From the NCBI GenBank assembly GCA_964199315.1, contig OZ116712.1, forward strand, positions 8,556,001 through 8,620,000: a DNA stretch of 64,000 nucleotides. Reading direction: 5' to 3'. Source of the stretch: Orbicella franksi (Eukaryota). A program made the translations under genes and the position numbers. This document shows, piece after piece, positions 18,123-64,000 of this stretch (position 1 is the first letter of the stretch; every line of letters starts with the position of its first letter). The notes beneath the pieces were generated by a model that was not told where the DNA came from, did no database searches, and worked only from the letters and a program-made list of their open reading frames with translations.

Positions 18123-18153
<31 letters not shown>

Positions 18154-38915: not shown

Positions 38916-41900
38916 TTTCCCACAAACCAGGCCTGGGCAGAGAGATGCATTGCGAGAGTTACGTCTCTTGCGGAAAATAAATCCTGACAAGGAAGGCAAC
39001 AAAACAAAAGTTAAACCGTAGCATATAACTTACTTCACCCCCGTGACAAACCATTCGAAATTAAACGATAAGTTCTGTCAATATTTTTCGCCACGCATTT
39101 CGTAATCTTAAACATTAAACAGAAATATTATTAAATATTAAACAGAGAAAGCAGTGGTTAATTTCATTTAGGAAAACCGAGACAAGAGTTTGAAACACAA
39201 CTGGCAAGGTCTCTGGAATTCCGATGAAACACTTTCTCGAGTGTTAACTCGAGAAAGTGTTTGACCTCAACACATCTTTAACCTCATCTCCCACATTAAA
39301 ACAAAATGTAATAAGTGATAGTTGTGATTATCTTCATCTCAATTTGACGAATTATTCACAAGTTTGAGAAAAACAATTCATACCGTGATCTGCTGGTCGA
39401 AGTAGACGTTGATACTGTTGTAGAAACGGATGTTGATACACTTGTTGTAGTAGATGTTGACCCACTTGAACTTACAGAAGTGGACGTTGAGGTACTGGTG
39501 CTGGCACTTGAATATGTCGAGTAAACAGTTGTTGTTGGAGTACTGACACTTGATGAGGTTGATGTGGAAACACTGGTTGAGGTACTTGTGCTGATTGACG
39601 TTGATACACTTGAACTCAACGAAGTAGATGTTGAGGTACTTGTGCTTGCACTTGAATATGTCGAGTAAACAGTTGTTGTTGGAGTACTGACAATTGTGGA
39701 GGTTGACGTTGATGTAGAAACACTGGTTGAGACACTACTGCTGAGTGATGTTGACACACTTGTTGTGGTAGATGTCGAAACACTTGAACTCAATGAAGTC
39801 GTTGTTGAAATACTTGTACTGGCACTTGAATATGTCGAGTAAACCGTTGTTGTTGGAGTACTCACACTCGTTGAGGTTGATGTGGACACACTGGTTGAGA
39901 TACTTGTGCTGATTGACGTTGATGCACTTGAACTCAACGAAGTAGATGTTGAAGTACTTGTGCTTGCACTTGAATATGTCGAGTAAACCGTTGTTGGTGG
40001 AGTACTGACCCTTATTGAGGTTGATGTGGAGACACTGCTTGACACACTTGTGGTTTTTGATGTCGATGTGCTTGTTGACGCACTTGTGCTCAACGAAGTA
40101 GATGTGGAGGTACTTGTGCTTGCACTTGAATATGTCGAGTAAACAGTTGTTGTTGGAGTACTGACACTCGATGAGGTTGATGTGGAAACACTGGTTGAGG
40201 TACTTGTGCTGATTGACGTTGATACACTTGAACTCAACGAAGTAGATGTTGAAGTACTTGTGCTTGCACTTGAATATGTCGAGTAAACCGTTGTTGGTGG
40301 AGTACTGACCCTTATTGAGGTTGATGTGGAGACACTGCTTGACACACTTGTGGTTTTTGATGTCGATGTGCTTGTTGACGCACTTGTGCTCAACGAAGTA
40401 GATGTGGAGGTACTTGTGCTTGCACTTGAATATGTCGAGTAAACAGTTGTTGTTGGAGTACTGACACTCGATGAGGTTGATGTGGAAACACTGGTTGAGG
40501 TACTTGTGCTGATTGACGTTGATACACTTGAACTCAACGAAGTAGATGTTGAGGTACTTGTGCTTGCACTTGAATATGTCGAGTAAACAGTTGTTGTTGG
40601 AGTACTGACACTTGTGGAGGTTGACGTTGATGTAGAAACACTGGTTGAGACACTACTGCTGAGTGATGTTGACACACTTGTTGTGGTAGATGTCGAAACA
40701 CTTGAACTCAATGAAGTCGTTGTTGAAATACTTGTACTGGCACTTGAATATGTCGAGTAAACCGTTGTTGTTGGAGTACTCACACTCGTTGAGGTTGATG
40801 TGGACACACTGGTTGAGATACTTGTGCTGATTGACGTTGATGCACTTGAACTCAACGAAGTAGATGTTGAAGTACTTGTGCTTGCACTTGAATATGTCGA
40901 GTAAACCGTTGTTGGTGGAGTACTGACCCTTATTGAGGTTGATGTGGAGACACTGCTTGACACACTTGTGGTTTTTGATGTCGATGTGCTTGTTGACGCA
41001 CTTGTGCTCAACGAAGTAGATGTGGAGGTACTTGTGCTTGCACTTGAATATGTCGAGTAAACAGTTGTTGTTGGAGTACTGACACTTGTGGAGGTTGACG
41101 TTGATGTAGAAACACTGGTTGAGACACTACTGCTGAGTGATGTTGACACACTTGTTGTGGTAGATGTCGAAACACTTGAACTCAATGAAGTCGTTGTTGA
41201 AATACTTGTACTGGCACTTGAATATGTCGAGTAAACCGTTGTTGTTGGAGTACTCACACTCGTTGAGGTTGATGTGGACACACTGGTTGAGATACTTGTG
41301 CTGATTGACGTTGATGCACTTGAACTCAACGAAGTAGATGTAGAAGTACTTGTGCTTGCACTCGAATATGTCGAGTAAACCGTTGTTGGTGGAGTACTGA
41401 CCCCTATTGAGGTTGATGTGGAGACACTGGTTGAGGTACTTGTGCTGATTGACGTTGATACACTTGAACTCAACGAAGTAGATGTTGAAGTACTTGTGCT
41501 TGCACTTGAATATGTCGAGTAAACCGTTGTTGGTGGAGTACTGACCCTTATTGAGGTTGATGTGGAGACACTGCTTGACACACTTGTGGTTTTTGATGTC
41601 GATGTGCTTGTTGACGCACTTGTGCTCAACGAAGTAGATGTGGAGGTACTTGTGCTTGCACTTGAATATGTCGAGTAAACAGTTGTTGTTGGAGTACTGA
41701 CACTTGATGAGGTTGATGTGGAAACACTGGTTGAGGTACTTGTGCTGATTGACGTTGATACACTTGAACTCAACGAAGTGGATGCGGAGGTACTTGTGCT
41801 TGCACTTGAATATGTCGAGTAAACAGTTGTTGTTGGAGTACTGACACTTGTGGAGGTTGACGTTGATGTAGAAACACTGGTTGAGACACTACTGCTGAGT

Positions 41901-44900
41901 GATGTTGACACACTTGTTGTGGTAGATGTCGAAACACTTGAACTCAATGAAGTCGTTGTTGAAATACTTGTACTGGCACTTGAATATGTCGAGTAAACTG
42001 TTGTTGTTGGAGTACTGACACTTGACGAGGTTGATGTGGAAACACTGGTTGAGGTACTTGTGCTGATTGACGTTGATACACTTGAACTCAACGATGTGGA
42101 TGTTGAAGTACTTGTGCTGGCACTTGAATATGTCGAGTACACTGTTGTTGTAGGAGTACTCACACTGGCAGAGGTTGATGTAGATACACTGCTTGAAATA
42201 CTCGTGGTCTTTGATGTTGATATGCTTGTTGACACACTTGAGCTCAACGAAGTTGATGTTGAAGTACTTGTGCTGGCACTTGAATATGTGGAATAAACGG
42301 TTGTTGTTGGAGTACTGACACTTGTTGAGGTTGAAGTTGACGTGGAGACACTGCTTGACACACTAGTGCTGACTGATGTTGATACGCTTGATGTAGTTGA
42401 TGTCGACACACTTGAACTCAATGAAGTCGTTGTTGAAATACTTGTACTTGCACTTGAGTATGTCGAGTAAATTGTAGTTGTTGGAGTACTAACACTTGTT
42501 GAAGTTGATGTGGACACGCTGCTCGACACACTCGTACTAACAGATGTTGAAACACTTGTCGAAGTAGATGTTGACACACTTGAACTCAGAGAAGAGGATG
42601 TTGAGGTACTTGTGGTGGCAGTTGAATATGTCGAGTAAACAGTTGTTGTTGGAGTACTCACGCTTGCGGAAGTCGAGGTGGACACGCTGCTTGACACACT
42701 TGTGGTTACTGATGTTGACGTACTTGTTGACACACTTGAGCTAAGCGAAGTGGAAGTCGAGGTACTAGTGCTCGCACTTGAATATGTCGAGGAGACCGTT
42801 GTTGTTGGAGTACTGACACGTTTCGTGGTTGAGGCTGATGTGGACACACTGCTTGACACACTAGTGCTAACTGATGTTGATACACTTGTCGTAGTAGAAG
42901 TGGACACACTTGAACTTAGTGAGGTCGTTGTAGAAACGCTTGTGCTTGCACTTGAATATGTCGAGTAAACTGTTGTTGTTGGAGTACTCACACTCTTTGA
43001 GATTGATGTGGATACACTGGTTGAAGTACTTGTGCTAACTGATGTTGATGGGCTGGAACTTAACGAAGTGGATGTCGAAGTACTTGTGCTTGTACTTGTC
43101 GAGGTAGGTGTGGACACACTGTGATAAGAGAAAATGTTTACATGATAGCGGATTTCAACCGACTTAATTGCTAATATTTAGTCGTGGAGCATGGAAACTT
43201 CAATCCGTTTCATTCACTGAATTTGACTCTACAACTGTTTGTTTGTTTTTAATTTTACACTATGCAGTGGTACGTGCTTAGGGTAGCAAATTTGAGAATA
43301 GCTTCTGTCAAAATATTTGGTATTGAATTACTTTAAACTTCAGTTGAAAGTGATTTTCCGTATTTTGCTACCTGAAGTTTAGATTTTTCTTGAACTTACA
43401 TACGGTGTACAGCTGAATGAGAAAATGAATCATGGTGGGTGTCATGACTTATAAACAGTGAAATTTGAAAAGCTTGAACAACAACACTAAATTTACTGTA
43501 GCGTAGTTTGGTGGAATTCATGTTCTGCAAATTCATCTCTTACCTCGTGGAAACTGACGTGGATACACTTGTTGTTGTTGACGTTGACACACTTGAGCTA
43601 TGCGAAAATAACAATTAACATAGAATTAAATCATTGGTATTGGTATTATGCAATAATAACAACGAGGCCTTGTAGTATCACTAACTGTAATACAATAAGT
43701 TTCGTTTGTATGGACCATAAGTGGGTGAACTTGGGAAAAGTTACCGTCAGTCAGTCGGTTAGTCGGTCAGTTGGTCAGGTCAGTCGGTCAGAAAGAAAGA
43801 GAAAGTTACTAATCAACAAATGTTCGCATCTCCTCTCTTTTAGATTCCCCCAAAATGGCAATTATCACCCTTCCTCCCAAAAATGTTCCCCCCTTCTTCT
43901 CCATTACAATACTTGGTCTATATTCAAGAAAGTACGGTGCAAAAGATTTCCTTAAAAGGATGGCCATTATTAAGAGGGAACAGTACGATATGAGAAAGGA
44001 ATCCAACCAATACAAATGCTACAAAATCTGCTTGACATGTTGAGACTTGAAATGACCCCTACCCTCCTCCTCCGCCCCTCCACCTCCCTCTCTTTGTTTT
44101 TACATTCCGGCTCCCCCTCTATCAAGTCTCTTTCTGCTCTTATGCATGGTATCTCGGAATTGGGATGCACTCTTTTGTTCATGACATGAGTCACAGAACA
44201 CGTTCTTGCTTCAACTTCTTTGGGCTTCTCGAACTCTTGACCAGCCCTTCACTAACAGAAAAATCTAATAACCTGTAAGATGAAACAGTTGGTTTGGACG
44301 TTCGTGCCGGCGGCTTCAAACTTGGCGGTATTCTACTTGTTGTAGGAATGGAGAATTGTGTCCCTGTAGTTGTCACCACGGTAGACGGGAACACGGTGGC
44401 TGCGGTCTTCTGAGAAACTGATTTATATGAAGTTGTCTCTGATTCAGAGGATGACGGTGACGGGAACACTGGAGACGACTTTGTTGTTGACGTCACTGTA
44501 AACCCTGATCTTGGTGAAGATTCACTTATCACGCGTGAAGATGGAACTTGAGTGAGGACAGGTCTAAGCGGTTAGAACAAATGAGTTGGCACCTTTACAG
44601 ATCATCTTGATCTTAATGTAACTGTATTCATGGAATATACTAATAAGTCTTCCCCAGTAAAAACTCCAGTGTTAACAACGCCGTACCATTATCATATTAA
44701 AGCTTGAAAATTTAGAGTACTAGTTACTATTAGCATAACCCAGCGGCTGACTATCAGAAACCTCGCAATCTGTTTGGCTAAACGGCTACTTACCATTTAA
44801 CAATTAGATTATGAAGTTGAGATTTCTATGAGGTGATAGTTGACGAGGCCGAAGGCCGAATTAACTATCACCTCATTGAAATCGAAAGGGAATAATCTAA

Positions 44901-45569: not shown

Positions 45570-45605
<36 letters not shown>

Positions 45606-48600
45606 TATTAGTCTTTGCCATTACTACTACAACACACCCCTCCCCCGCATCCTGAACGGAAGTACTCTACGCTGCGACCTGTGAAACCCAAATCCACGCT
45701 TCATTCACACGGAGATCAGCGAAAGACCCAAGACTATAAATAAGACCGAAGTTAGACCGCGGCCTTAAGATCCAACTACGACCAAATATGGCGAAACACT
45801 GTTGTTTACAGCAGCATATTTAACTGTTTATAAAACAAGCCGAGAAACGTCTTAAATAGAACTGGCTAACGAAATTGGTCAAAGCAACCGACGACTATGC
45901 TGAGGAGTCAGGCATCCCATATATGGCAACAATAACGTCATGCCCGATTTCCAAAAGGACAACACGGATGGCGAGAAAATGTTTGCTACATTTCCTGTCT
46001 TACAAAAATAGTAAGCATGAATTGTATCTGGTATTTGGAATAATACGTTCGGTTTGTAACCGCAAACTTGTGGTTAAGACTTTACCAAACTTATGTCTCG
46101 CAAATAAGAAACAAATATTTTTTTGAAACAATATTTCATTGTATTACATTTTTTCACAACATTATTACATTGCACCGATCCAATTTCGACAAATAGACCA
46201 TCAAAACGAAAAACAGCTGACATCAATGCCTTCTATTTGAAAGTCTACCTGAAAACTGCATTCCTTCGTCTCTGGGATTTGACTAGTTTTCAGAACAACT
46301 TAAAGCCTTTTATGCTTTTCTTACTTTTCTCTTGATTATCATTTGTGATTTGCCATTAAATATGACAACATAGCAATAGCTCTATACTGCCGTTGACCAA
46401 ACGACGGAAAGATCTGCTATTCCCGCTCAGAGAAGAGGAGAGAAGTTAATTAGTCAGATTTTTAACGTTCCAATCCCTAGTTACTTTTCCAAAAACTTGG
46501 TACAAAAGTACTTTGAGAATAAAAAGAGCTAACACAAAGAAAACCCCAGCTTTGAAAACATTCTTGTTCGATGTTACAAAATTTATATTTGTCTCTTTCA
46601 CACCTCATTTCCACAGCGAATATGTTATCCCGCAAGCAAAACGTATTTCTCGGCAATTGTCGCTTATATTTAGTCGTGACTAAGAGCTCTCAACCTAAGA
46701 AATGGGAAGTGGCACACGCTCTACAAACACACGCGGACCTACAAGCCCAGTTGGAAAAGAGCTGGTAAAGCTAGGTTATTGCTGACAGTTTTCCAAAGGC
46801 TTCGTGCAAATTCAGTCATCTTTTAGGTATATCAACTGTAACAGTCCAAAGAAAATCATTTTCTAAAACAACTTGCACACCTCAAGACGACCTTTCTCTT
46901 GTACACAAACATGGTCTGAAAAGCCAGAACTAGGACTAAATGTAAAAGGCCGACCTAAGTCTATGAAAAACCACCTAGCCAAGGACAAACACACGCACTT
47001 TACGTAGAATAACCAAGCAATCAAACTAATAAATAAACAATCACAGAATAATATAATCACTCATTGTTATCACGCGGCATACCTGGAAATACTCTTGGAC
47101 GTTGAAGTACTTGTTGAAGTTGAAGTAGACACACTACTTGACAAACTAGTGCTGACTGATGTTGATACGCTTGTTGAAATAGATGTTGACACACTTGAAC
47201 TTAACGATGTCGAAGTTGAGGTACTTGTTGACTTTGAAGTAGATACACTACTTGAGGTACTTGTGCTGACTGATGTTGACGCACTTGAAGTCGACGCGAT
47301 CGAAACTGTTGTTATCGGAGTACTGACACTTGCTGAGGTTGATGTGGACACGCTGCTTGACACACTAGTGCTGACTGATGATGACAAACTTGTTGTGGTA
47401 GATGTCGACACGCTTGAACTCAGGGACGTGGATTTTGAAGTACTTGTGCTGGAACTTGAATATGTCGAATAAACCGTTGTTGTTGGAGTACTCACACTTG
47501 TTGATGTGGAAGTGGATGTGGAGACACTGCTTGACACACTAGTGCTGACTGATGTGGATACACTTGTTGTGGTCGATGTCGACACACTTGAAGTCAGTGA
47601 TGTCGTCGTTGAAACACTTGTACTTGCACTTGAATATGTAGAGTAAATCGTTGTTGTGGGAGTACTTACACTTGTTGAGGTTGAGGTTGAAGTAGAGATG
47701 CTACTCGACACACTAGTGCTCACTGATGTTGATACACTTGTTGACACACTCGAACTTAATGATGTCGACGTTGAAGTGCTTAATGATGTCGATGCTGAAG
47801 TACTTGTAGACTTTGAAGTGGACACACTAGTTGAGGTACTTGTGCTAGCACTTGAATACGTCGAGTAAACAGTTGTTGGTGGAGTACTGACACTTGTGGA
47901 GGTTGAGGTTGATGTAGAGACACTGGTTGAGACACTACTGCTGAGTGATGTTGACACACTTGTTGTGGTCGATGTCGACACACTTGAACTCAGTGATGTC
48001 GTCGTTGAAATGCTTGTACTCGCACTTGAATATGTCGAGTACACCGTTGTTGTGGGAGTGCTGACACTTGTTGAGATTGAGGTTGAAGTGGAGATGCTGC
48101 TCGACACACTGGTGCTCACTGATGTTGATACACTTTTTGACACACTCGAACTTAATGATGTCGACGTTGAAGTGCTCGTCGACTTTGAACTGGACACACT
48201 AGCTGAGGTACTTGTGCTTGCACTTGAATATGTTGAGTAAACCGTTGTTGTTGGAGTACTCACACTTGTTGAGGTTGATGTGGATACGCTGCTTGACACA
48301 CTTGTGGTCACTGAAGTTGATGCACTTGATGACACACTTGAGCTCACCGAAGTAGATGTACTTGTGCTGGCACTTGAAAATGTGGAGTAAATCGTTGTTG
48401 TTGGGGTACTGACACTTGTTGAGGTTGATGTTGACACGCTGGTAGACACACTAGTGCTGACGGATGTTGATACACTTGTCGACACACTGGAACTCAGCGA
48501 GGTGGATCTTGATATACTTGTGCTGGCACTTGAGTATGTCGAGTAAACCGTTGTGGTTGGAGTACTGACACTAGCGGAGGTTGATGTTGAGACACTGCTT

Positions 48601-51600
48601 GATACACTGGTGCTAACTGATGTTGATGTACTTGTTGAGGTCGACGTGGACACACTTGAACTCAATGATGTCGATGTTGAGGTACCTGTGCTTGCACTTG
48701 AGTATGTCGAGTAAACCGTTGTTGTTGGAGTACTGACACTTGTTGAGGTTGATGTCGAGACACTGCTTGATACACTGGTGCTGACAGACGTTGACACACT
48801 TGTGGTAGTAGATGTCGACACACTTGAACTGAGCGAAGTCGTTGTTGAAACACTAGTGCTGGCACTTGAATATGTCGAGTATACCGTTGTCGTTGGCGTA
48901 CTGACACTTACTGAGGTCGAAGTTGATGTGGAGACACTGCTTGACACACTAGTGCTGACTGATGTTGATATGCTTGTTGACACACTTGAACTTAACGAAG
49001 TAGATGTTGAAGTACTTGTGCTTGCACTTGAATATGTCGAGTATACTGTTGTTGTTGGGGTACTAACACTCGCTGAGGTTGATGTGGACACACTAGTGCT
49101 AACTGATGTTGATACACTTGTTGTAGTAGATGTTGACACACTTGAACTCACAGAAGTGGATGTTGAAGTACTTGTGCTGGCACTTGAATACGTCGAGTAA
49201 ACCGTTGTTGTTGGAGTACTGACACTTGTTGAGGTTGACGTTGATGTGGAGACACTGCTTGACACACTTGTGCTGACTGATGTTGATACACTTGTTGTAG
49301 TCGATGTTGATACACTTGAATTGAGTGAAGTCGTTGTTGAAACACTTGTACTAGCGCTTGAATATGTCGAGTACACTGTTGTCGTTGGAGTGCTGACACT
49401 CGTTGAGGTTGATGTTGAAGTGGACACACTGCTCGACACACTTGTGCTAACTGATGTTGATGTACTTGTACTAGTTGACGTTGACGTAGATGCGCTGTTG
49501 AGATATCGTTAGATAAAAGCTTGTAAGAATCAATAACGACTTGGTTAGTAACGTTCCTCTCATTGTGACGCTGATGAAAGGAAAACTGTTATAAGAATTT
49601 TAAGTTTAGTTGAGTATAAATATTTTTACTTCAACATTTGCTGCCTTTTCTTCGCTCTCCACTCTTAAGAGGGTCGAGTTTGTTGTTGGTTCTTGTCCTT
49701 GCTCAGAGGGTTTTCTCCCTCCAAAAGAAAAACAGCACTTTCCAAATTCCAATTCGATTCAGAAGCAGTGGAGGAATAGCCACTCCGTGGAGGTGCTACT
49801 GATAATTCCCATTATTTTTGTTAACCATTTCATCAATTCTATTGAATGAGGGTTGAAACATGCATTTTTTTTCCTTCTCGAGGCAACGTTGTACAACATA
49901 ATAACAACATTCATCTTTGTAAAAAGTTAGGTTTTTAATGGCATATTTTCAGTGAAACATTTCAGTGTAGCTATACGACGCAGATATTTAAAACCAGATC
50001 AAACGTCTGCCACATCATTTTGAACATTGTGTTTAAAGCTGGCTTCGTGTAACATGCGTAAAGATCACCGACCGATACAATCGGCTACAAATCGTATTGT
50101 GTTGTATCGTATTTTAGGACAGTCAAGGGCAATTGCGAAATTTGAAGGTGAGTTCCCTTGAGACATAGTCAATACAGAGGAATGTTATGAGGCCCGGCAA
50201 ACATCAAAGGAGAAAATAGGGATGCCAAGATTTATGTTAGAAGGTCCACGACCGTGTACAAGCTTTTGTTTTGTACTCACGCACCATGCATGAATTACGG
50301 ACACAAAACCAAAACGTTTCTATTGGTTTATTCCTTAGAGTTGTCCTCAGTCAGAAGTAACAACTATTGTGTTTTGTGCAAGGTCAAAGCCAAAGAAGTA
50401 AACAAAAACATGCAAACAAACTTTTCGCGTTTCATAACCATTTCTCTCTATTACGATTAGTACCTTAATGTCCACTTTAATACCAAACTCAATTTTTCTC
50501 ATGCTCACTAATTTTTCCGCTTCAAGTAACTCGCGTTTGCGTGTAACCTGAGTTCAATGGTGTGCTTTAAAAACTCTCCACCTCGGAAAATGCAGCATCA
50601 TTTGGAGATTGAGGAATCAAATGCGCCTTTTTTCCTCACTATGTACAATGTATGATACTGCATAGATGTTACGGCTTCTCCAAAACAGTTAACTATCACA
50701 TTTGCACTTTAAAGATAAAAGAATGATTGCACCCTGTTCTCAAATCGGTAAAGAGTTAAAGCCGATGAACACGGTAAAAAAAAACAACCTTATTGTAAAA
50801 CATCTTTTAACATTTTTTTTAAGTTTCCTTTCAAAATGGAAACTAGCGTAGAATTCTTGAACATTTTAGTCCAACAATCTAGCCAATCGAATTAAATTTC
50901 TCTCCAGTGATACCATTCCCTCATACCAGGATCCCCTGGCCAAGGGGCACATGTGAACCTGCGGACGATAATGAGTAAAAGGCTGATGATGATTGGTACT
51001 TCGCAAACGCAATAAATTACCAACAACAATATCATCCACTGATTTACCGTCAAGTTGCTATCACTAAATACTTTAGAATTGATTCCCATGCTGAAAACAA
51101 AACCCAGTCTAATTACCTGTAAGATGAGACAGTTGACGCGGATGATCGTGTCGGCGTCTTCAAACTTGGCGGTATTCTACTTGTTGTAGGAATGGAGAAC
51201 TGTGTCCCTGTAGTTGTCACCACGGTAGACGGGAACACGGTAGCTGCAGTCTTCTGAGAAACTGATTTGTACGAGGTCGTCGCAGATTTAGATGAAGACA
51301 AGCTGAAAGAGGGCATTAGCATTGCTTTCAGTAAGATGAACATGGAATTCGTAAGCAAATCGCAAAGCACTGTTAAAATGGTTTGAATTTATCTCAAATT
51401 GGCAAAAACCTTGTTATATTTAGGTATCAATGCCACTAAATCTTACAAACAGCAGTTTGGAGAGCAATAATAATTTGGATAAGACCTTAATTAAATATTA
51501 TTTAATCTTAGAGGAACTATTTCTCGGCTTTGTACGTATTACCATACTCAAATTAGCAATTAGCCAATCAGAAGCCTCGTCCACTATCCTGATATCACTT

Positions 51601-54600
51601 TTTTTTTTATCTCAATGTCCTGATATCGTGCGAAATCAAGACACTGAACTGATATGGCTACGATATCATCAGCTTCGATGAGGCGATTACCCTATCGTAC
51701 ATTTTTGGTACGCTTCAGTGGCATACTAGCCTTGTTCCCATATTGCCATATTGGCAATTGCAAGCGTCTTAATCGACGACGAAAACCGTTACAGAAAGCA
51801 TCGTAAATCGTAAACCTTATTAATTTATTAACATAAAACCAATTAGCAGTACACACTCTACCTTGTACTGGTTGAAACGCTCGTAGTAACAGACGTAGAC
51901 ACACTTGAACTTAGTGAAGTCGAAGTTGACGTACTTGTTGACGTTGAGGTGGACACACTAGTGGAAACCGATGTGGAAACACTTGCCGTCGAAGATGTGG
52001 ACACACTTGAACTCAATGACGTTGATGTTGAAACACTTGTGCTTGCACTTGAATATGTCGAGTAAACTGTTGTTGTTGGAGTACTGATACTCGTTGATGC
52101 TGAGGTCGAGACACTGCTTGAAACACTAGTGCTGACCGATGTGGACACACTTGTTGAAATAGATGTGGAAACACTTGAACTCAATGACGTTGATGCCGAA
52201 ACGCTTGTGCTTGCACTTGAATATGTCGAGTACACTGTTGTTGTTGGAGTACTGATACTCGTTGATGTAGACGTGGACGTGGATGTTGAGGTGGAGACAC
52301 TGCTTGACACACTAGTGCTAACTGATGTGGAAACACTTGTGGTAGTAGATGTGGAAACACTTGAACTCAACGACGTTGATGTCGAAACGCTTGTGCTTGC
52401 ACTTGAATATGTCGAGTACGCTGTTGTTGTTGGCGTACTGACACTAGTTGAGGTGGACGTGGACGTCGAGGCCGAGACACTACTTGACACACTAGTGCTG
52501 ACTGATGTGGACACACTTGTTGTAGTAGAACTGGACACACTCGAACTCGATGACGTTGATGTTGAAACACTTGTGCTAGCACTTGAAAATGTCGAGTAAA
52601 CTGTTGTTGTTGGAGTACTGAGACTCGTTGATGTAGATATGGACGTAGATGTGGACGTTGAGGTCGAAACACTGCTTGACACACTAGTGCTGACTGATGT
52701 TGACACACTTGTAGTAGAAGTCGACACACTTGAACTCAATGATGTTGATGTTGAAACACTAGTGCTGGCACTTGAATATGTCGAGTACAATGTTGTTGTT
52801 GGAGTACTGACACTTGTTGAGGTTGATATTGATGTTGATGTTGAAGTGGACACACTGCTTGACACACTAGTGCTAACTGATGTCGATACACTGGTTGTAG
52901 TAGATGTGGACACGCTTGAGCTCAATGACGTCGATGTTGAAACGCTTGTGCTTGCACTTGAATACGTCGAGTACACTGTTGTTGTTGGAGTACTGACACT
53001 CGTTGAGGTTGATGTGGATGTTGATGTTGATGTTGATGTTGATGTTGATGTTGATGTTGATGTTGAAGTGGACACACTGCTTGACACACTAGTGCTAACT
53101 GATGTCGATACACTTGTCGTAGATGTGGACACGCTTGAGCTCAATGACGTCGATGTTGAAACGCTTGTGCTTGCACTTGAATACGTCGAGTACACTGTTG
53201 TTGTTGGAGTACTGACACTCGTTGACGTTGATGTGGATGTTGATGTTGATGTTGATGATGAAGTAGACACACTGCTTGATACACTAGTGCTAACTGATGT
53301 CGATACACTGGTTGTCGTAGATGTGGACACGCTTGAGCTCAATGACGTGGATGTCGACACACTTGTGCTTGCACTTGAATACGTCGAGTACACTGTTGTT
53401 GTGGGAGTACTGACACTCGTTGAGGTTGATGTTGGTGTGGACACACTGCTTGACACGCTCGTACTTACTGACGTTGATACACTTGTTGTAGTAGATGTGG
53501 ACACGCTTGAGCTCGATGACGTGGATGTCGACACACTTGTGCTTGCACTTGAATGCGTCGAGTACACTGTTGTTGTGGGAGTACTCACACTCGTTGAGGT
53601 TGATGTTGATGTGGACACACTGCTTGACACACTCGTGCTTACTGATGTTGATACACTTGTCGTAAGAGATGTTGACACACTTGAACTCGATGATGTGGAT
53701 GTCGACACACTTGTGCTGGCACTTGAATATGTGGAGTACACTGTTGTTGTTGGAGTGCTGACACTCGTTGAGGTTGATATTGATGTTGATGTTGAGGTGG
53801 ACACACTGCTTGACACACTAGTGCTAACTGATGTGGACACACTGGTTGTCGTAGATGTGGACACGCTTGTACTCAATGACGTGGATGTCGAAACGCTTGT
53901 GCTTGCACTTGAATACGTCGAGTACACTGTTGTTGTTGGAGTACTGACACTCGTTGATGTAGATGTGGACGTGGACGTGGAGGTCGAGACACTGCTTGAC
54001 ACACTCGTGCTGACTGATGTGGACACACTTGTTGTAGTAGATGTAGACACACTTGAACTCAATGACGTTGATGTTGAAACACTTGTGCTTGCACTTGAAT
54101 ATGTCGAGTAAACTGTTGTTGTTGGAGTACTGACACTCGTTGAGGTAGATGTGGACGTACTACTCGACACACTAGTACTGACTGATGTAGATGTGCTCGT
54201 TGACACACTTGAACTCAGTGAAGTTGATGTTGAAGTACTTGCACTACTAGCACTGAGATGGAGAACAATTAATACACAATTTGAGTGTTTGTCTTACAGT
54301 ACATTAGAAGTACCTTTGTAATTAAGAATTGATGCTTTAGGGCACATTATCGAATTATTTTTAAAGTTTGAAGAGTAATAAAGAAACGTAAGAGATGCTC
54401 CCTGTAGAATCTAGAGCTACTCGAGTTTTTGGAGTGCTCTCCAATCTTCTCAGGTATGATAACTGATGATGCGGAACTTGAAGTATTAAGGACTTCTTTC
54501 ATAACATTGCAAATAGAAACTGCGAAACGAAGTGAGCTGCTAACGCCATGAGCATGGTAGTTTTAAAGCGAAGCTTTGCTATCGAAATTATATAGAAATT

Positions 54601-57600
54601 GATAATTTTCTTGTCCAAGCTCTTTTCTCACTAATTCTTTTCCAGTGGTGAGTTGTAAACGACGAGACTGATTATCATTTGTGTGCTATACTTTTCTGTC
54701 GATTTCAGAGCTAAAACAACTCAGAAACAAAAAGCGGTACATGGAAGCTAGTTCTAGCTTTCACCTTTTGTAAAGACGTCATGGACAGGACAACAACTGC
54801 TCATGATTGTGTTTCAATCTCTAAGAGCCATCGTGCGGAATGACCCCACGAGTGTGTGTTGCAATCACATGAAAATCACATGACAGGGGAATTGTATTAC
54901 TGTCTTTACGCTCAGTCACGTAAAAGGAATCTCGTTACACCTTTGTGACCACCAATGTGGGGGATAGGTAGTTTTTACTGGTTTCATGCCTTTAAACCGA
55001 CTTTAAAATGCGCCGTTTCAGAGCCGACGGGAGTGATTAACCAAATTAACGTTATTACGCTAGTACGTTTATTCGGTAGAATTTATTGCTGTTGGAAACG
55101 AAATCCGTGCGATTGTAAATAGGTAATTTTCGTATACTCGGTTTTAGCTAGAGCTAGTCAGCAAAGAGGGATTTGTTTTGTTTTAAAATGCGAATCAAAA
55201 GAAGCCATTTTTTCATTATTCTTCTAAATTGTCATATTTTGTAACTTCATTTCAGTTTTATCTCGTACATTATAAATGTTCTGTTAAGTAATTGGACGAC
55301 ATGCTGGTACTGCACACACGTCACTGCTCTGAGATTTCCATCACGATCATTACAAACCAACTAACTGTCCACTTGTTCGTCAGACATATTGCAGACCGTC
55401 TAGAGTTTCTGTATATATTACTTTTCACCAAATATCATTACCATATTCAGGTTTTCTTTCCCTTACTTCCACCTTTCTAATTCTATAAGTATACGCCGCA
55501 GGCAATTACCTGTTAGATGAAACTGTTGACGCGGATGACCGTGTCGGCGTCTTCAAACTTGGTGGTATCCTACTTGTTGTAGGAATGGAGAATTGTGTCC
55601 CTGTAGTTGTCACCACGGTAGACGGGAACACGGTGGCAGCGGTCTTCTGAGAAACTGATTTATATGAAGTCGTCGGTGATTTAGATGACGAGAAGCTGAA
55701 AGAGGACATAAATGTATATTTCATTAATCGGGATTAACTTTAACTTTGATTTTATTTGAATTCGTTGCATACATAGGAAACCAAACTGATAAAATAATAA
55801 AATAATGTTAGTAATAGATAAATAAATAAATAAATAAATAAATAAATCATTAGCGTCAACAACTGGAGCAGAAAACAGGACGATGTCCGAATCGATATTC
55901 AGCCCCAACAAAATATATTTGAAATAGCAACAAAATGGTAATAATAATTGTGGTAGTAGTAAAACAGCAATAATTATTACATGATAATAATTTGATTTAA
56001 AAATAAATAATAATACATACTTACACCCCCACTATTTGGAAGAGCTTGGAAGATTATAACATTGTATAAGAAAATTTATAATTACTGCTAGGAGGCTTTC
56101 ATTTCTCTCAAATTTGTAACAAAACTTATGTACTGTGTTTGTATGTTCATGTCACCGTTAACTCCGATCTTCAAAATGACGCCTCTGTCATATATACCGT
56201 AATGAGGATGCAGTTTGGTAAGTGAAGATGAAATCGCAAGCACATTCAAGAAATCAATTTCTTCACCACTATATATCCCTGCCATATCACTATATTATTT
56301 GCGATAATGTGCAATACTCCCCGGTCCTTTAAGCCAATCAGTTCAAGTTCCCCTGAGGTGACATTCACGCTCCGGGTTTTTCTCGATCAATGAGAGAAAG
56401 AAAAGCCTACATGAAGCTGAAAGCTTAAAAGAAAGCAACAATGGCCTAATATTGTTCGGTAATATAAATCTGTAAGTACAATATTCATGTCCTTTTACAA
56501 AAAAGTGCGTCTATGGTTTAACCAACTCCAAGACCACCGAAAGCTGAACGTAACAAGCAAAAATCGGCTCACGTCTAACGAGGCCGGCATTTTTGAGACA
56601 ATGTAAGGTAAATTAAGACAGGTATGTCGTGCGTGAAAACTGGAACGCCTCCCCAGATTAGCGCAATCATTTCGCTACTTTAGCACGGAGGAGAAGACAC
56701 TACAGCACAATATCATGCAATAGACAAACCATCCTTGAAAAGGAGTCGTGTAACACGACACCAATTCCAAAAACGACATCTAAAAATGCAGGCCGGGAGC
56801 ACCTGAATCGGTGCTAACCGCAAAACAGCAAATCAAACAACAAGGTAATAAACTTCCACTTTTCTAAATCAAAAAAACAAAAATAGAACAGAATATATAA
56901 AAAATTATCTCATCCTACCTTGTGCTGGTTGACACACTCGTAGTCACAGAAGTTGACGCACTTGTCGTGGTAGAAGTTGAGGTACTTGAACTCAATGAAG
57001 TTGAAGTTGACGTACTGACGCTTTTTGAAGTTGATGTCGACACACTACTTGATACACTAGTGCTGACTGATGTGGACACACTTGTTGTCGTAGATGTTGA
57101 CACACTTGAACTTATGGAAGTTGTTGTTGATACACTTGTGCTGGCACTTGAATAGGTCGAGTAAACCGTTGTTGTTGGAGTACTGACACTCGTTGAGGTC
57201 GATGTTGAGGTGGAGACACTGCTAGATAAACTAGTGCTGATTGATGATGACACACTTGAACTCAACGAACTGGATGTTGATGTACTTGTGCTGCCACTTG
57301 AATATGTCGAGTACACTGTTGTTGTTGGAGTACTGACACTTGCCGATGTTGACGTAGACACGCTGCTTGAGACACTAGTGCTGAGCGATGAAGACACACT
57401 CGTCGTAGTAGACGTGGAAACGCCTAAACTCCATGAAATAGGTGTAGACGAGCTTCTACTAGCGCTTGAATATGTCGAGTACACCGTTGTTGTTGGAGTA
57501 CTGACACTTGTTGAGGTTGACGTTGAAGTGGAGACACTGCTTGACACACTTGTGGTGACTGATGTGGATACACTTGTTGTAGTAGATGTTGACACACTTG

Positions 57601-60600
57601 AACTCAGTGACGTGGTTGTTGAAATACTTGTGCTTGCGCTTGAATATGTCGAGTAAACCGTTGTTGTTGGAGTACTGACACTTGTTGATGTCGACGTTGA
57701 GGTGGACACACTGCTTGACACACTTGTGGTGACTGATGTTGATGTACTTGTCGACACGCTTGAGCTCAAAGAAGTGGATGTTGAGGTACTTGTGCTTGCG
57801 CTTGAATATGTGGAGTACACTGTTGTTGTTGGAGTGCTGACACTTGTTGATGTTGACGTTGAGGTGGAGACACTGCTTGATACACTAGTGCTGACTGATG
57901 TTGACACACTTGTTGACGTAGAACTGACACTTGTTGATGTTGATGTTGATGTAGAAACACTGCTAGAAATACTAGTGCTGACTGATGTTGATGTACTTGT
58001 TGAGACACTTGAACTCAAAGATGTGGATGTTGAAGTACTTGTACTGGCACTTGAATATGTCGAGTAAACCGTTGTTGTTGGAGTACTGACACTTGTTGAA
58101 GTAGAGGTTGATGTTGAAACACTGCTTGAAACACTAGTGCTGACTGATGTTGACACACTTGTTGTCGTAGAGGTCGACACACTTGTACTCAATGAGGTTG
58201 TTGTTGAAACACTTGTGCTTGCACTTGAATATGTCGAGTAAACTGTTGTTGTTGGAGTACTCACACTTGTTGAAGTTGATGTGGACACACTTGTGCTGAC
58301 GGATGTTGAAACACTTGTTGAAGTACTTCTTGAAACACTTGAACTCAAAGACGTGGAGGTTGAGGTACTTGTGCTGGCACTTGAATATGTCGAATAAACA
58401 GTAGTTGTGGGAGTACTGATACTGGCTGAGGTTGATGTGGACACACTGCTTGACACACTAGTGGTGACAGATGTTGACACACTTGAGCTGAGGGAGGTTG
58501 ACGATGAAGTGCTTGTACTTATGCTTGTTGAGGTGGAGGTGGAGACACTGGTACTAATTGAAGTTGATACACTAGTTGTAGTTGATGTCGACAAACTTGA
58601 ACTCAAGGAAGTAGAAGTTGAAACACTCGTGCTGGCACTTGAATATGTCGAGTACACTGTGGTTGTTGGAGTACTCACACTTGTTGAGGTGGACGTGGAA
58701 GTGGAGGTAGAGACACTGCTTGACACACTAGTGCTGACTGATGTGGACACACTAGTTGTAGTAGATGTTGACGTACTTGAACTCAATGAAGTGGATGTTG
58801 AAACACTTGTGCTGGCACTCGAATATGTCGAGTAAACCGTTGTTGTTGGAGTACTGACACTTGTTGAAGTCGAGGTTGAGGTGGAGACGCTGGTAGAAAC
58901 ACTAGTGCTGACTGATGTTGACACACTTGAACTCAATGAAGTGGAAGTTGAAGTACTTGTACTGGTGCTTGTAGAGATTGAACTGCAAAACAAGGAAATT
59001 GATAACAATTTGTATCTCCCGTCTAGTGTTCAGGGTATTGACGTAGACGGACTTGTAGGTGACGTGGCTAAATGTTTTTGTTGTTGTTGTTGTCTCAGGC
59101 AAACTGCTCATGTGCTACGTTGTATGTGAGTAAACCATACTCCATTTGTGCAAAGAGTAAAAGAGTTAATCTCCCACTGTAGGCCTTGACCCTTAAACCT
59201 TTCAAACCATTTTCATCCTTAACGAAAACATCCACTCAAAGGGCGTGATAACATTATGCGCGGAAGGACTAGGTAACATGTCTCAAAATAAATTCAAAGG
59301 GAGTTTTAGAAGGCTTTTAATTGTGATTAACTGTCTTACACTTCATCCTATCTCGATTTGGACAATGGCATGAATAACCACGCAGGAAGTGAGCTCAAAC
59401 AGCTAATAAAATGCCATCAATTACGACGGTCAATTCACAGTGCTTGAATGAGTCGATAATCACTTGCTTGTGATTGAACACGACCAAAACTACACATACT
59501 TTGTTCTCTCAGTACTCTTCCATGAAACAGGGAGAGGGGAGTGGGGTACCTATTCAACAGGGAAGCGTTTATTTTAAATTTTGGCCGATAGGAGGGGCGC
59601 TTATTTGAGGGGAGACGTTAATTCGAGAACTTATGGTATGTGTAACTTAGGATAGGTGTTACTTAGTTATTCAACGAACCTTCTGCACATTAAATTAGGT
59701 ATAAACAGAAATGTTTAATTCTAGCAAGAATATAATTGGAACTAAACAGAACTACTGTATCAGTCAGACAGAAGCACATATATGCAGAACTGCACGAATT
59801 TGTCAGCGCTCAATAAATTCAGAAACATTTTCCACTATTAAAGAATACAAACTAACGTGTAAGATGAAACAGTTGGTTTGGACGTTTGTGCCGGCGGCTT
59901 CAAACTTGGTGGTATCCTACTTGTTGTAGGAATGGAGAATTGTGTCCCAGTTGTTGTCACCACGGTAGACGGGAACACGGTGGCTGCGGTTTTCTGAGAA
60001 ACCGATTTATATGAAGTTGTCGCAGATTTAGATGACGACAAACTGAAAAAAAAAACGTATTTAAGATGCGAAGGTTAGAATCATTAAACGTTCGCGTAAA
60101 CAGAGCGAAATACAGTCACTTTTGGACTTCTAAGTATGTGAATTTGCCATAAGGACTCTGAAATAACGTCACAAGGAGACGTGATTTGATCAGCAAACTT
60201 GTATTTAATGTTGCACTAGGTATGGTCACAAACCTCGGTAAGACCAAATGAAACTATAAGAACGCACAACTTTGCTAGTAACAAATTCCTTCAGATCAAT
60301 GTATTTCTGGCATGTCTGGCATGTCCATCTATTGTAAATAGTACAACGTTTGGTATATTTTTCAACAGCTCGCGATGTTAGAAGTTCGAGTTCGACTTTG
60401 AGCAGCTGGTAGCTCAGGTTAGAAACTTTATTTTGGTTTAGTTTAAAGTATAGAGACCTTTCTGGTCTAATTTGAAAGGAAAATGGTGTTTTTATCAAAT
60501 CCTGGGGAAAAATGGCATTTACAAGATGACAATTTAGCGCATGATTTAAAAATATAATTAAGATATATTCGTACAGACTGTTTATAAAGTTACCATTCTC

Positions 60601-60793: not shown

Positions 60794-60825
<32 letters not shown>

Positions 60826-63800
60826 AATCAAAGGCAACGGGCGCAGTCTTTGTGATCCGTATTATCAGCACCATCATTATCTAATCAGCACAATTATCCT
60901 TTTCAGAACCGAATATCGAGATACGAACACCGTTGCAACACCTCTCTTAGTCCTTTACAATTAAATCACTCTGTCAAGTACGCTCTATAAATGATCTCTT
61001 AAACACAGAACGAGCACAGGCCACAGAGGAAATGATGGCACGAGATTTTTCTCAATTGAAATAGACAAGGCATTTTTCTTTTCTCGAAATGTTTCTAAAA
61101 GAAATAGAAAGCATTCCCTCTGTGTTTATATCTAGTCAAAGAAACACTTGAGTAGAACTCCAAAAATCTGTCGAAACACACGCCTGTGGCTCGAGTTCCC
61201 ATAGAGTTTCCTTTTTCCTCAAAACTCGTGCTTCTATAACTCGCTCAACCAAGACCGGATTTTACAACAAAAACCCTATAAAATATAAGTAGTTCAAAAA
61301 TTAATCTGGAAACCTGGACTTCACCTTCTCTAAAAACTCGATACACCGAAACTTAAAAAGGAGTAAGGGAACGTAAAACATGTTACTGAATCATATATTT
61401 ATATCATTTACCCTTCAAAATTCATCTTAACCAAGCAGCTTACCTTGTACTAGTAGATACACTTGTGCTCGTAGACGTTGACACACTTGAACTTAGTGAA
61501 GTGGATGTTGACGCACTTGTACTCACACTAGTACTGACCGATGTTGATACACTTGTTGTAGTAGATGTTGACACACTTGAACTCAATGATGTGGATGTCG
61601 ACACACTTTTGCTAGCACTTGAATACGTCGAGTACACTGTTGTTGTTGGAGTACTGACACTTGTTGAGGTTGATGTCGAGGTTGATGTTGATGTTGAAGT
61701 GGACACACTGCTTGACACACTAGTGCTAACTGATGTCGATACACTTGTTGTCGTAGACGTGGACACGCTTGAGCTCAATGACGTGAATGTCGACACACTT
61801 GTGCTTGCACTTAAATATGTGGAGTATACTGTTGTTGTTGGAGTGCTGACACTCGTTGAGGTTGATATTGATGTTGATGTTGAAGTGGACACACTGCTTG
61901 ACACACTAGTGCTAACTGATGTCGATACACTTGTTGTCGTAGATGTGGACACGCTTGAGCTCAATGACGTCGATGTCGACACACTTGTGCTTGCACTTGA
62001 ATACGTCGAGTACACTGTTGTTGTGGGAGTACTGACACTAGTTGAGGTTGATGTGGATGTGGATGTTGATGATGATGTTGATGTTGAAGTGGACACACTG
62101 CTTGATACACTAGTGCTAACTGATGTCGATACACTGGTTGTCGTAGAAGTGGACACACTTGAGCTCAATGACGTGGATGTCGACACACTTGTGCTTGCAC
62201 TTGAATACGTCGAGTACACTGTTGTTGTGGGAGTACTCACACTCGTTGACGTTGATGTTGATGTGGACACACTACTTGACACGCTCGTGCTTACTGATGT
62301 TGATACACTTGTTGTAGTAGATGTTGACACACTTGAACTCAATGATGTGGATGTCGACACACTTGTGCTCGCACTTGAATATGTGGAGTACACTGTTGTT
62401 GTTGGAGTGCTGACACTCGTTGAGGTTGATATTGATGTTGATGTTGAGGTGGACACACTGCTTGACACACTACTGCTAACTGATGTGGACACACTTGTTG
62501 TCGTAGATGTGGACACGCTTGAACTCAATGATGTGGATGTCGACACACTTGTGCTTGCACTTGAATACGTCGAGTACACTGTTGTTGTTGGAGTACTGAC
62601 ACTCGTCGAGGTTGAGGTTGAGATTGAAGTGGAGACACTGCTTGATATACTAGTGCTGACGGATGTTGATACACTTGTTGCAGTAGATGTTGACACACTT
62701 GAACTCAGTGACGTGGTTGTTGAAATACTTGTGCTTGCGCTTGAATATGTCGAGTAAACCGTTGTTGTTGGAGTACTGACACTTGTTGATGTCGACGTTG
62801 AGGTGGACACACTGCTTGACACACTTGTGGTGACTGATGTTGATGTACTTGTCGACACGCTTGAGCTCAAAGAAGTGGATGTTGAGGTACTTGTGCTTGC
62901 GCTTGAATATGTGGAGTACACTGTTGTTGTTGGAGTGCTGACACTTGTTGATGTTGACGTTGAGGTGGAGACACTGCTTGATACACTAGTGCTGACTGAT
63001 GTTGACACACTTGTTGACGTAGAACTGACACTTGTTGATGTTGATGTTGATGTAGAAACACTGCTAGAAATACTAGTGCTGACTGATGTTGATGTACTTG
63101 TTGAGACACTTGAACTCAAAGATGTGGATGTTGAAGTACTTGTACTGGCACTTGAATATGTCGAGTAAACCGTTGTTGTTGGAGTACTGACACTTGTTGA
63201 AGTAGAGGTTGATGTTGAAACACTGCTTGAAACACTAGTGCTGACTGATGTTGACACACTTGTTGTCGTAGAGGTCGACACACTTGTACTCAATGAGGTT
63301 GTTGTTGAAACACTTGTGCTTGCACTTGAATATGTCGAGTAAACTGTTGTTGTTGGAGTACTCACACTTGTTGAAGTTGATGTGGACACACTTGTGCTGA
63401 CGGATGTTGAAACACTTGTTGAAGTACTTCTTGAAACACTTGAACTCAAAGACGTGGAGGTTGAGGTACTTGTGCTGGCACTTGAATATGTCGAATAAAC
63501 AGTAGTTGTGGGAGTACTGATACTGACTGAGGTTGATGTGGACACACTGCTTGACACACTAGTGGTGACAGATGTTGACACACTTGAGCTGAGGGAGGTT
63601 GACGATGAAGTGCTTGTACTTATGCTTGTTGAGGTGGAGGTGGAGACACTGGTACTAATTGAAGTTGATACACTAGTTGTAGTTGATGTCGACAAACTTG
63701 AACTCAAGGAAGTAGAAGTTGAAACACTCGTGCTGGCACTTGAATATGTCGAGTACACTGTGGTTGTTGGAGTACTCACACTTGTTGAGGTGGACGTGGA

Positions 63801-64000
63801 AGTGGAGGTAGAGACACTGCTTGACACACTAGTGCTGACTGATGTGGACACACTAGTTGTAGTAGATGTTGACGTACTTGAACTCAATGAAGTGGATGTT
63901 GAAACACTTGTGCTGGCACTCGAATATGTCGAGTAAACCGTTGTTGTTGGAGTACTGACACTTGTTGAAGTCGAGGTTGAGGTGGAGACGCTGGTAGAAA
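35263..64000 (-). CDS. Gene A (3' part, spliced): giant gel-forming-mucin-like protein; Ser/Thr repeat domain, VWC-like module, C-terminal cystine knot
   Basis: Join (transcription order): >64000-61444, 60042-59857, 58982-56919, 55695-55510, 54252-51862, 51302-51117, 49494-47083, 44563-44273, 43597-43544, 43118-39384, 38598-38459, 37818-37760, 36948-36820, 36100-36052, 35666-35263. All introns are GT-AG and the phases chain into one open frame of about 14.8 kb. Ends in an 11-Cys CK domain and TAA. Confidence 0.88.
35821..35974. mobile_element. MITE (154 bp) in the last intron of gene A
   Basis: 33-bp TIR CAATTTCGATATGTTAAAATTCTAACTTAGCGC with one mismatch. Confidence 0.78.
36052..36100 (-). 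CDS. Gene A exon: end of VWC-like module (GYIRPPANDKECCPPC)
   Basis: CCPxC motif that closes VWC domains; acceptor ttatcgcAG; donor G|GTAAGT. Confidence 0.85.
36820..36948 (-). CDS. Gene A exon: VWC-like module (VGSSWTDGSCKRLKC...CDKCPA)
   Basis: G-S-S-W-x4-C-x4-C pattern typical of VWC; acceptor ggttgtAG; donor GCG|GTATGT; phase 0-0. Confidence 0.82.
37550..37632. repeat. Palindromic repeat family member; related copies at about 18630-18695 and 61140-61245
   Basis: AAGTTTGGGAGAACTCGAAAAAGCTGTGG … CCACAGCATTTTTCGTTCTCCCAAACTT. Confidence 0.65.
37760..37818 (-). CDS. Gene A exon: start of VWC-like module (SFCPSCVYINSKNETEYHA)
   Basis: Acceptor tttttcattcctgcAG; donor GCG|GTGAGT; phase 1 to 0, which bridges the flanking exons in frame. 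Confidence 0.78.
38459..38598 (-). CDS. Gene A exon: last non-repetitive Ser/Thr segment (SSSLVTTGTPTVSTSSSISS...)
   Basis: Acceptor ccttttcAG; donor T|GTAAGT; phase 2 to 1. Confidence 0.82.
39384..43118 (-). CDS. Gene A exon: largest Ser/Thr repeat exon (1245 codons, 23 anchor motifs)
   Basis: Acceptor ctcttatcacAG; donor CG|GTATGA; 3735 nt, phase 2-2. Confidence 0.92.
43544..43597 (-). CDS. Gene A 54-nt micro-exon (SSVSTSTTTSVSTSVSTR)
   Basis: Acceptor ttttcgcatAG; donor AG|GTAAGA; phase 2-2; sequence matches the repeat unit. Confidence 0.75.
44273..44563 (-). CDS. Gene A extended spacer exon, copy 4 (97 codons; PVLTQVPSSRVISESSPRSG...TTSYKSVSQKTAATVF...)
   Basis: Acceptor ctaaccgcttAG; donor AG|GTTATT; 291 nt, phase 2-2; contains the same 41-aa core as copies 1-3. 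Confidence 0.85.
44799..44905. repeat. Hairpin element
   Basis: AACAATTAGATTA…ATGAGGTGATAGTTGA-GGCC-GAA-GGCC-TTAACTATCACCTCAT…TAATCTAATTGTT. Confidence 0.65.
45440..45607. repeat. (CCT)n(CAT)n compound microsatellite
   Basis: Seen directly. Confidence 0.92.
47083..49494 (-). CDS. Gene A exon: Ser/Thr repeat domain (804 codons)
   Basis: Acceptor atctcaacAG; donor AG|GTATGC; 2412 nt, phase 2-2. Confidence 0.88.
49670..49760 (+). mobile_element. SINE-like repeat fragment
   Basis: GGTCGAGTTTGTTGTTGGTTCT…CCTTGCTCAGAGGGTTTT…TTTCCAAATTCCAATTCGA resembles a common anthozoan SINE body (recognised from memory, not searched). Confidence 0.45.
51117..51302 (-). CDS. Gene A 186-nt spacer exon, copy 3
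   Basis: Acceptor ccctctttcAG; donor AG|GTAATT; phase 2-2. Confidence 0.88.
51862..54252 (-). CDS. Gene A exon: Ser/Thr repeat domain (797 codons)
   Basis: Acceptor tctccatctcAG; donor AG|GTAGAG; 2391 nt, phase 2-2. Confidence 0.9.
55510..55695 (-). CDS. Gene A 186-nt spacer exon, copy 2
   Basis: Acceptor ctctttcAG; donor AG|GTAATT; phase 2-2. Confidence 0.88.
56919..58982 (-). CDS. Gene A exon: Ser/Thr repeat domain (688 codons)
   Basis: Acceptor ttgttttgcAG; donor AG|GTAGGA; 2064 nt, phase 2-2, no stops. Confidence 0.9.
57581..58899. repeat. Near-identical 1.3-kb exonic duplication; partner at 62682-64000
   Basis: Constant offset of 5101 bp (e.g. antisense ORFs 57702-58067 vs 62803-63168 and 58407-58835 vs 63508-63936); very few substitutions. 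Confidence 0.92.
59857..60042 (-). CDS. Gene A 186-nt spacer exon, copy 1 (LSSSKSATTSYKSVSQKTAATVFPSTVV...)
   Basis: Poly-T acceptor ttttcAG; donor AC|GTTAGT; phase 2-2; paralogous to three other exons. Confidence 0.88.
60796..60824. repeat. (CAT)n microsatellite
   Basis: Seen directly. Confidence 0.9.
61444..64000 (-). CDS. Gene A exon: Ser/Thr tandem-repeat domain (starts upstream of the window)
   Basis: Open frame of STPTTTVYSTYSSAST-anchored repeats; donor ACAAG|GTAAGC at 61444, phase 2. Confidence 0.9.

Follow-up and report, generated by a model that had tools for sequence, protein, structure and literature searches.

Gel-forming-mucin-like proteins have been described in Nematostella and Hydra, and the working definition of a mucin domain is a repetitive sequence with at least 40% Ser+Thr and usually more than 5% Pro (PMC4948705). 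The mucins of Acropora mucus are presented as highly O-glycosylated in one report (PMC11189453), and the protein cores of coral mucins are so far almost undescribed. Long Ser-X dipeptide repeats are found in the serine-rich repeat proteins (SRRPs) of Gram-positive bacteria, which are O-glycosylated stalks (PMC6973325, PMC3131266), and the [(SX)nE]m blocks of caddisfly H-fibroin form Ca2+-cross-linked phosphoserine beta-domains (PMC13267644, PMC4929942). Here we analyzed a stretch of 64,000 nucleotides (nt) from the genome of Orbicella franksi (GenBank assembly GCA_964199315.1, contig OZ116712.1, positions 8,556,001 to 8,620,000; the whole stretch is hereafter called the window), which encodes a long Ser/Thr/Val domain with Ser at nearly every second position. 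A literature search found no published description of this Ser-X repeat. Our results make it likely that this region encodes the central part of a secreted gel-forming coral mucin, a domain that presumably bears dense O-glycans, and that the two-residue steps in which its repeat units vary in length are a by-product of the mutation substrate.

On the minus strand, from 39.4 kb to the end of the window, five open frames of great length (704-1,273 codons) encode nearly exclusively Ser, Thr and Val. DNA fetched from upstream of the window holds the remainder of the fifth frame, one 989-codon exon and one 132-codon exon, and the complete repeat core thereby comprises about 5,600 amino acids (aa) in seven large exons, five of them inside the window. 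The core is made of repeats of 48-86 aa, and each unit of 48-68 aa carries TPTTTVYSTYSSA once as punctuation. Units were defined by splitting the translation at the anchor STPxTT, and the large repeat exons are separated by short Cys-free, Pro-containing exons. The exons and the RNA-supported introns are given below, where a phase slip is a change of the Ser-X register and extended coordinates are the window numbering continued past 64000 into the fetched upstream DNA.

39384..43118, minus strand: repeat exon E1, with 23 anchors, 22 units of 48, 52, 56 or 58 aa and no phase slip; acceptor at 43118 from RNA junction reads, donor GT following 39384.
43543-43119, minus strand: intron supported by RNA.
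43544..43597, minus strand: micro-exon of 18 codons (SSSVSTSTTTSVSTSVST), flanked by the spacer exon and E1, placed by RNA joints.
44272-43598, minus strand: intron supported by RNA.
44273..44563, minus strand: 97-codon Cys-free spacer exon, Pro-containing (PVLTQVPSS...KPTVSSY), placed by RNA joints.
47082-44564, minus strand: intron supported by RNA.
47083..49494, minus strand: repeat exon E2, with 12 units, all of even length, and one phase slip near 47285 within the degenerate last unit; donor at 47083 by RNA, acceptor near 49494 predicted from an AG site.
51117..51302, minus strand: short spacer exon, predicted from a polypyrimidine-AG acceptor and a GT donor.
51862..54252, minus strand: repeat exon E3, with 11 units, all even but two (73 and 63 aa), and phase slips at 53117 and 52712; canonical splice sites.
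55510..55694, minus strand: short spacer exon (predicted).
56919..58982, minus strand: repeat exon E4, with 9 units, of which a single 83-aa unit is odd, with its slip at 57922.
59857..60042, minus strand: short spacer exon (predicted).
61444..64000 in the window and onward to about 64083-64130 in extended coordinates, minus strand: repeat exon E5, with 12 units; a single unit (83 aa) is odd, and its slip at 63023 is a copy of that in E4.

The RNA-verified spacer exon (44273..44563) gave no match in Pfam, and alignment showed that the predicted spacer at 51117..51302 is homologous to its 3' two thirds. About 3.4 kb of the core is present twice (57600-61000 and 62700-66100 in extended coordinates, offset 5,101 nt, about 99% identity). 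This block contains half a repeat exon, introns and a spacer exon, and the upstream half of E4 is about 99% identical to part of E5. Either a tandem duplication of very recent date or an effect of the assembly could explain it, and the copy number of modules of this kind may vary between individuals.

Splicing of the core was observed directly in RNA. Three joints (44563>47083, 43597>44273 and 43118>43544) were present in raw reads of polyA RNA-seq from one study as well as in RNA contigs from two other studies, and they connect E2 to the 97-codon spacer, the spacer to the 18-codon micro-exon and the micro-exon to E1, in a joined frame that is open. On the plus strand the parts skipped at these joints start with CT and end with AC, which corresponds to GT..AG introns of a minus-strand gene. 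The exon ends named in the initial annotation of this DNA (43118, 39384, 51862 and 54252) all coincide with canonical AG/GT sites. Coding by the Asp/Val-rich open reading frames of 430-490 aa on the plus strand was considered and rejected, on the grounds of the minus-strand introns and of the differences between units of the same length, 76% of which fall at third codon positions of the minus frame. The long plus-strand Asp/Val frames are by this last figure mirror artefacts.

The sequences on both sides of the core identify the type of gene. Downstream of it, an open frame on the minus strand (35266..35754) matched the Pfam families Cys_knot (E 1.6e-7) and DAN (E 9.6e-9). Upstream, minus-strand exons matched Kunitz, three sets of VWD+C8 and TIL; there are three TIL matches, one of them under Pfam's cut-off. 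The Kunitz/BPTI exon (E 3.9e-12) is located at 89294-89575 in extended coordinates, also on the minus strand, just upstream of the first VWD exon of this gene, which we call gene 1. No VWD4, VWC or other Pfam domain was found in the five open frames between E1 and the knot. In this minus-strand gene of about 55 kb a Kunitz domain is followed by three VWD-C8 modules with TIL, by the Ser/Thr/Val repeats and by a C-terminal cystine knot, and on the basis of this architecture we assign it to the gel-forming mucins. EGF-like exons are also present further upstream, at 90.5-93.7 kb in extended coordinates.

The composition of the repeats agrees with the initial description of a Pro-poor domain dominated by Ser, Thr and Val, with about one Pro per unit: S accounts for 46.2%, T for 30.3%, V for 10.9% and P for 1.8% of the residues. 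Ser+Thr thereby reaches 76.5% over the about 5,600 aa of tandem repeats. Measured by the working definition of a mucin domain, this Ser+Thr content is extreme, whereas Pro is scarce. The 3,844 repeat-unit residues include 0 Asp, 0 Glu and 4 Gly, and the X positions are occupied by Thr (about 55%) and Val (about 20%), then by Ser, Ala, Ile or Leu. That Ser stands at nearly every second position was likewise borne out, as the autocorrelation of Ser amounts to about +0.6 for a lag of 2 and to about -0.5 for a lag of 1, and as a two-state register tracker found Ser at 79-84% of in-register positions and at about 10% of out-of-register positions. The same tracker detected no register change in E1, a single change in each of the exons E2, E4 and E5, and two changes in E3, giving about 0.8 phase slips per 1,000 aa for gene 1. 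With its abundant Ser and Thr (76% of residues) the core would offer acceptor sites for O-glycans that stiffen the chain into an extended brush, and the function of the lattice is most likely that of a dense glycan carrier.

A perfect (GATGTT)8 tract at 53017-53064 of the plus strand was found exactly as first annotated. On the coding strand it reads (ACATCA)n, encoding (Thr-Ser)n in the tail of the 73-aa unit, and it is the only perfect hexamer tract of at least four copies in the window. That the lattice is a simple hexamer microsatellite was rejected in view of this single tract, the mixed Ser codon families and the weak lag-6 periodicity of the DNA. Ser is encoded by 1,164 TCN and 893 AGY codons, with the family fixed by column within the unit, and the DNA identity is merely 0.37 at lag 6 as compared to 0.32 at lag 3, so that the lattice cannot be a young hexamer expansion. 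Comparison of 145 unit pairs that align without gaps gave a proportion of synonymous differences (pS) of 0.34 and one of nonsynonymous differences (pN) of 0.043, a pN/pS of 0.126. Whereas synonymous rates were similar, X positions took 0.113 nonsynonymous differences per codon and lattice positions 0.049, which is lower by a factor of 2.3. Purifying selection at the protein level maintains both the lattice and the sequence of the units, as follows from the mostly synonymous change, the column-fixed Ser codons, the constraint on lattice positions and the occurrence of the same lattice in an old paralogue.

This tandem paralogue, gene 2, lies downstream of gene 1 and is a second gene of the same type that starts at about 23 kb in the window, with VWD/C8 exons at 1847-12627. 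Its D domains are 32-37% identical to those of gene 1. The Ser-rich core of gene 2 lies below window position 1, on the minus strand of contig positions 8496001-8554000, and is divided into at least 139 predicted micro-exons of 72 nt (105 exons), 102 nt (33) or 78 nt (1), all with even codon counts. Each of them has a predicted polypyrimidine-AG acceptor and GTA donor, and the introns have a median length of 237 nt. Joined together, the micro-exons encode 3,667 aa without a stop, and the array runs past the fetched DNA. The predicted core consists of 61% S, 21% T, 10% V and 1% P, with in-register Ser at 92.5% and no slip; its hexapeptide is SVSTSS, and a VSTPTTT motif recurs every few exons. 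DNA similarity between the exons of gene 2 and the units of gene 1 is low, and a recent transfer between the two genes is therefore unlikely. The Ser-X lattice is thus conserved at the protein level in two old paralogous coral mucins whose exon designs are entirely different. Two open frames of the window (629-1315 and 17974-18342, intergenic or intronic) have no obvious domain and look like repeat-derived sequence.

We then turn to the length of the units, which the initial annotation had reported to change in even numbers of residues. The anchor spacings of E1 are indeed 144, 156, 168 or 174 nt (48, 52, 56 or 58 aa), all 22 of them even, and in E3 even spacings account for 9 of 11, the exceptions being those of 73 and 63 aa. 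In the window as a whole 62 of 66 unit lengths are even, and in the whole gene, including the fetched upstream DNA, 76 of 80. The units behind these counts are not independent, as clustering at 95% identity reduces the 22 units of E1 to 11 clusters and the near-identical 3.4-kb block is common to E4 and E5; E1 is a higher-order repeat with Tandem Repeats Finder (TRF) periods of 300 and 474 nt. When units with at least 95% DNA identity were merged, 43 even and 3 odd remained. The variation in length resides mainly in the (TS)n tail, which measures 8 to 26 residues and is always even, and in STSV or 8-aa blocks, and the sub-repeats of the STSV blocks and the tail are units of 6, 12 and 24 nt.

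No other copies of the repeat were found in the same genome outside gene 1. There is therefore no unselected control, and a mutational-opportunity calculation on the coding sequence itself was used. Slippage and unequal exchange have direct repeats as their substrate. Exact ones were counted at in-frame offsets of 3-96 nt, and even-codon offsets outnumbered odd-codon offsets by 493 to 56 for repeats of at least 8 nt, by 190 to 21 for at least 9 nt and by 118 to 10 for at least 10 nt, i.e. about 90% were even. A minimum spanning tree built from the 56 distinct units implied 35 indels that are multiples of 6 nt and 6 that are 3 mod 6. These counts deviate strongly from 50:50 (P about 2e-6) without exceeding the expectation of 0.90 (P = 0.89). 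Even indels are the commoner ones, but their excess does not go beyond opportunity. This comes close to what the initial annotation had named as a refutation, an even bias explained by hexamer slippage, except that the coding sequence itself stands in for unselected control DNA. The even-step bias requires no selection for register.

The likely mechanism lies in the build of the unit. It is a nest of even sub-repeats, the 2-aa (TS)n tail, the 4-aa STSV blocks and the 8-aa blocks, in which replication slippage and unequal recombination find matching DNA almost only at multiples of 6 nt. Two-residue parity is therefore probably a by-product of the mutation substrate. Odd events also occur and have been retained. 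E3 carries two one-codon deletions (TTT to TT), which are probably independent of each other since the units in question have different nearest relatives, and the 83-aa fused odd unit was subsequently duplicated between E4 and E5, in one direction or the other. Altogether four or five odd slips persist, and they arose at least three or four times. The proposal in the initial annotation that the even steps reveal selection for register is hence not upheld, as parity is no stronger than the direct repeats predict and odd slips have been kept.

The most probable of the alternatives is selection on the alternating register itself, by which an extended or beta chain would have two faces, one of Ser and one of beta-branched Thr, Val and Ile, and odd indels would be removed. 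Several observations are consistent with it: the lattice positions are the more constrained ones, Thr, Val, Ser or Ile occupy about 85% of the X positions, gene 1 has few slips, within the range of SRRPs, and gene 2 is slip-free over its 3,667 aa and 138 predicted exon junctions. The exon classes of gene 2 also all have even codon counts, though a multiple of 3 nt would suffice. However, the even exon sizes amount to three independent classes, which together with the few unit types of E1 amount to very few independent observations. In addition to the parity at opportunity level and the persisting odd events, one of which was even spread by later duplication, AlphaFold2 predictions of four units gave a mean pLDDT (predicted local distance difference test score) of 37 and no confident fold, with beta strands at low confidence only, which by itself speaks neither for nor against beta structure, and dense glycosylation would block the packing of beta-sheets. 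We consider selection on the register unlikely. A wider version of the same idea is equally improbable in our judgment, namely that the main mucus polymers of corals are built on a conserved Ser-X lattice that forms a two-faced extended chain with a fixed pitch of glycans or phosphates, independent of but parallel to the SRRP stalks, with the register selected in both paralogues.

Alternatively, the Ser lattice could be a scaffold for phosphorylation by secretory-pathway kinases following the S-x-pS/E rule, giving Ca2+-bridged beta-domains in a mineral-interacting or fibre-forming polymer. Ser-x-Ser spacing is present throughout, corals calcify and secrete into Ca2+-rich seawater, and the (SX)n blocks of caddisfly H-fibroin provide a precedent (PMC13267644, PMC4929942). 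The caddisfly blocks end in Glu, though, whereas the repeat-unit residues counted above contain no acidic residue to prime a kinase, and the flanking domains are those of a gel-forming mucin and not of a fibroin, which leaves this possibility very improbable. Least probable of all is a lattice without a function of its own, a self-perpetuating low-complexity expansion in whose place any Ser/Thr-rich sequence would serve: the mutation substrate does favor retention of the register, and mucin domains are generally fast-evolving and judged by their composition (PMC9080433), but a pN/pS of 0.13 at a synonymous divergence of 0.34, the column-fixed Ser codon family with its low lag-6 identity, and the same lattice in a paralogue whose folded domains have diverged so far all speak against it.

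The reading of a glycosylated mucin core with parity as a mutational by-product has to be weighed against some results that do not favor it. The link from E1 to the cystine knot and the chain of N-terminal exons are predicted from open frames and Pfam matches, not from RNA. Mucin domains typically have about 5% Pro (PMC4948705), far more than this one, and the dominant residue here is Ser and not Thr; the modifying enzymes may therefore differ from the classic GalNAc transferases. Protein searches with E1, and with E2 by HMMER, returned only bacterial or phage Ser-X proteins, chiefly SRRPs, and no orthologue or eukaryotic relative, which does not imply that orthologues are absent, as such repeats are poorly modelled in annotations. 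The opportunity null is also partly circular, in that even-offset repeats exist because the DNA encodes the Ser-X lattice. What the direct-repeat null shows is that selection is unnecessary and that parity is self-perpetuating; selection is not thereby absent.

Some segments within the introns of the core are worth recording. Between 80% and 98% of the intron words also occur in sequencing runs of congeneric corals. Two pieces, 45178-45210 and 44795-44918, have high RNA depth with reads that continue into unrelated sequence on both sides, and they look like fragments of repeats expressed elsewhere rather than exons of this gene. The intron sequence at 45429-45655 is a simple repeat of trinucleotide type that would read as poly-His, poly-Ser or poly-Met depending on frame. 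At 61001-61243 an intron segment of about 165-270 nt has more than 40 matches on many contigs at 70-77% identity and probably represents a short, dispersed mobile element.

Coral mucus is a major reef carbon sink and the habitat of the coral microbiome. Our analysis provides an RNA-supported gene model for the core of one coral mucin, which is an uncharged Ser-X lattice and not a classic Pro/Thr/Ser domain. The lattice predicts which residues bear glycans and suggests rules of glycosylation unlike those of vertebrate mucins. As a caution on method, regular indel sizes in nested repeats stem from the repeat substrate and are alone no evidence of selection.

Compared with known systems, gene 1 resembles most closely the gel-forming mucins of the vertebrate MUC2/MUC5AC/MUC5B/MUC19 type. 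Common to both are the three N-terminal VWD-C8-TIL copies, the C-terminal cystine knot, a very long Ser/Thr-rich tandem-repeat center in giant exons, a tandem gene pair and transcription. The coral gene differs from them in its Pro content (1.8% as compared to the usual at least 5%), in having more Ser than Thr, and in a strict period-2 Ser lattice that is uncharged. Its repeat units are under purifying selection, Cys-free spacer exons take the place of CysD domains, a Kunitz domain precedes D1, and no VWD4 or VWC was detected between core and knot. Like the coral protein, caddisfly H-fibroin (PMC13267644, PMC4929942) is secreted by an animal under water and has Ser-X repeats whose X residues are frequently aliphatic or beta-branched. 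The caddisfly blocks, in contrast, are short and Glu-ended, alternate with Gly-rich spacers, are phosphorylated and form fibres, whereas the coral lattice is continuous over thousands of residues, has no acidic residues and is set in a mucin frame.

The lattice itself is most similar to that of the SRRPs (GspB, Fap1, SraP; PMC6973325, PMC3131266), which have Ser-X dipeptide repeats over hundreds to thousands of residues, with Thr, Val, Ala and similar residues at X. SRRPs led the matches of both protein searches, the best being an SRRP of 4,608 aa. Annotated SRRPs have in-register Ser of 0.84-0.97 and 0-5 slips per 1,000 aa, as compared to 0.79-0.84 and about 0.8 in the coral; in all twelve SRRP-type matches analyzed, two of them unnamed, the ranges are 0.66-0.97 and 0-9. 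The coral gene is a nuclear animal gene with GT-AG introns and without homology to SRRPs, and Pfam found no SRRP domain in it. The KxYKxGKxW signal peptide, the LPXTG anchor, the binding region between SRR1 and SRR2 and the accessory Sec locus have no counterpart, and the Glu and Asp that SRRPs include at X positions are missing from the coral repeat. The introns, the unit anchor and the metazoan domains on either side led us to reject a horizontal origin from an SRRP. Since the lattice belongs to a spliced metazoan mucin gene and the other features that define SRRPs fail, the likeness, measurable in the lattice metrics, is one of convergence, as the initial annotation had suggested. The coral lattice is a natural animal counterpart to the bacterial serine-rich adhesins.

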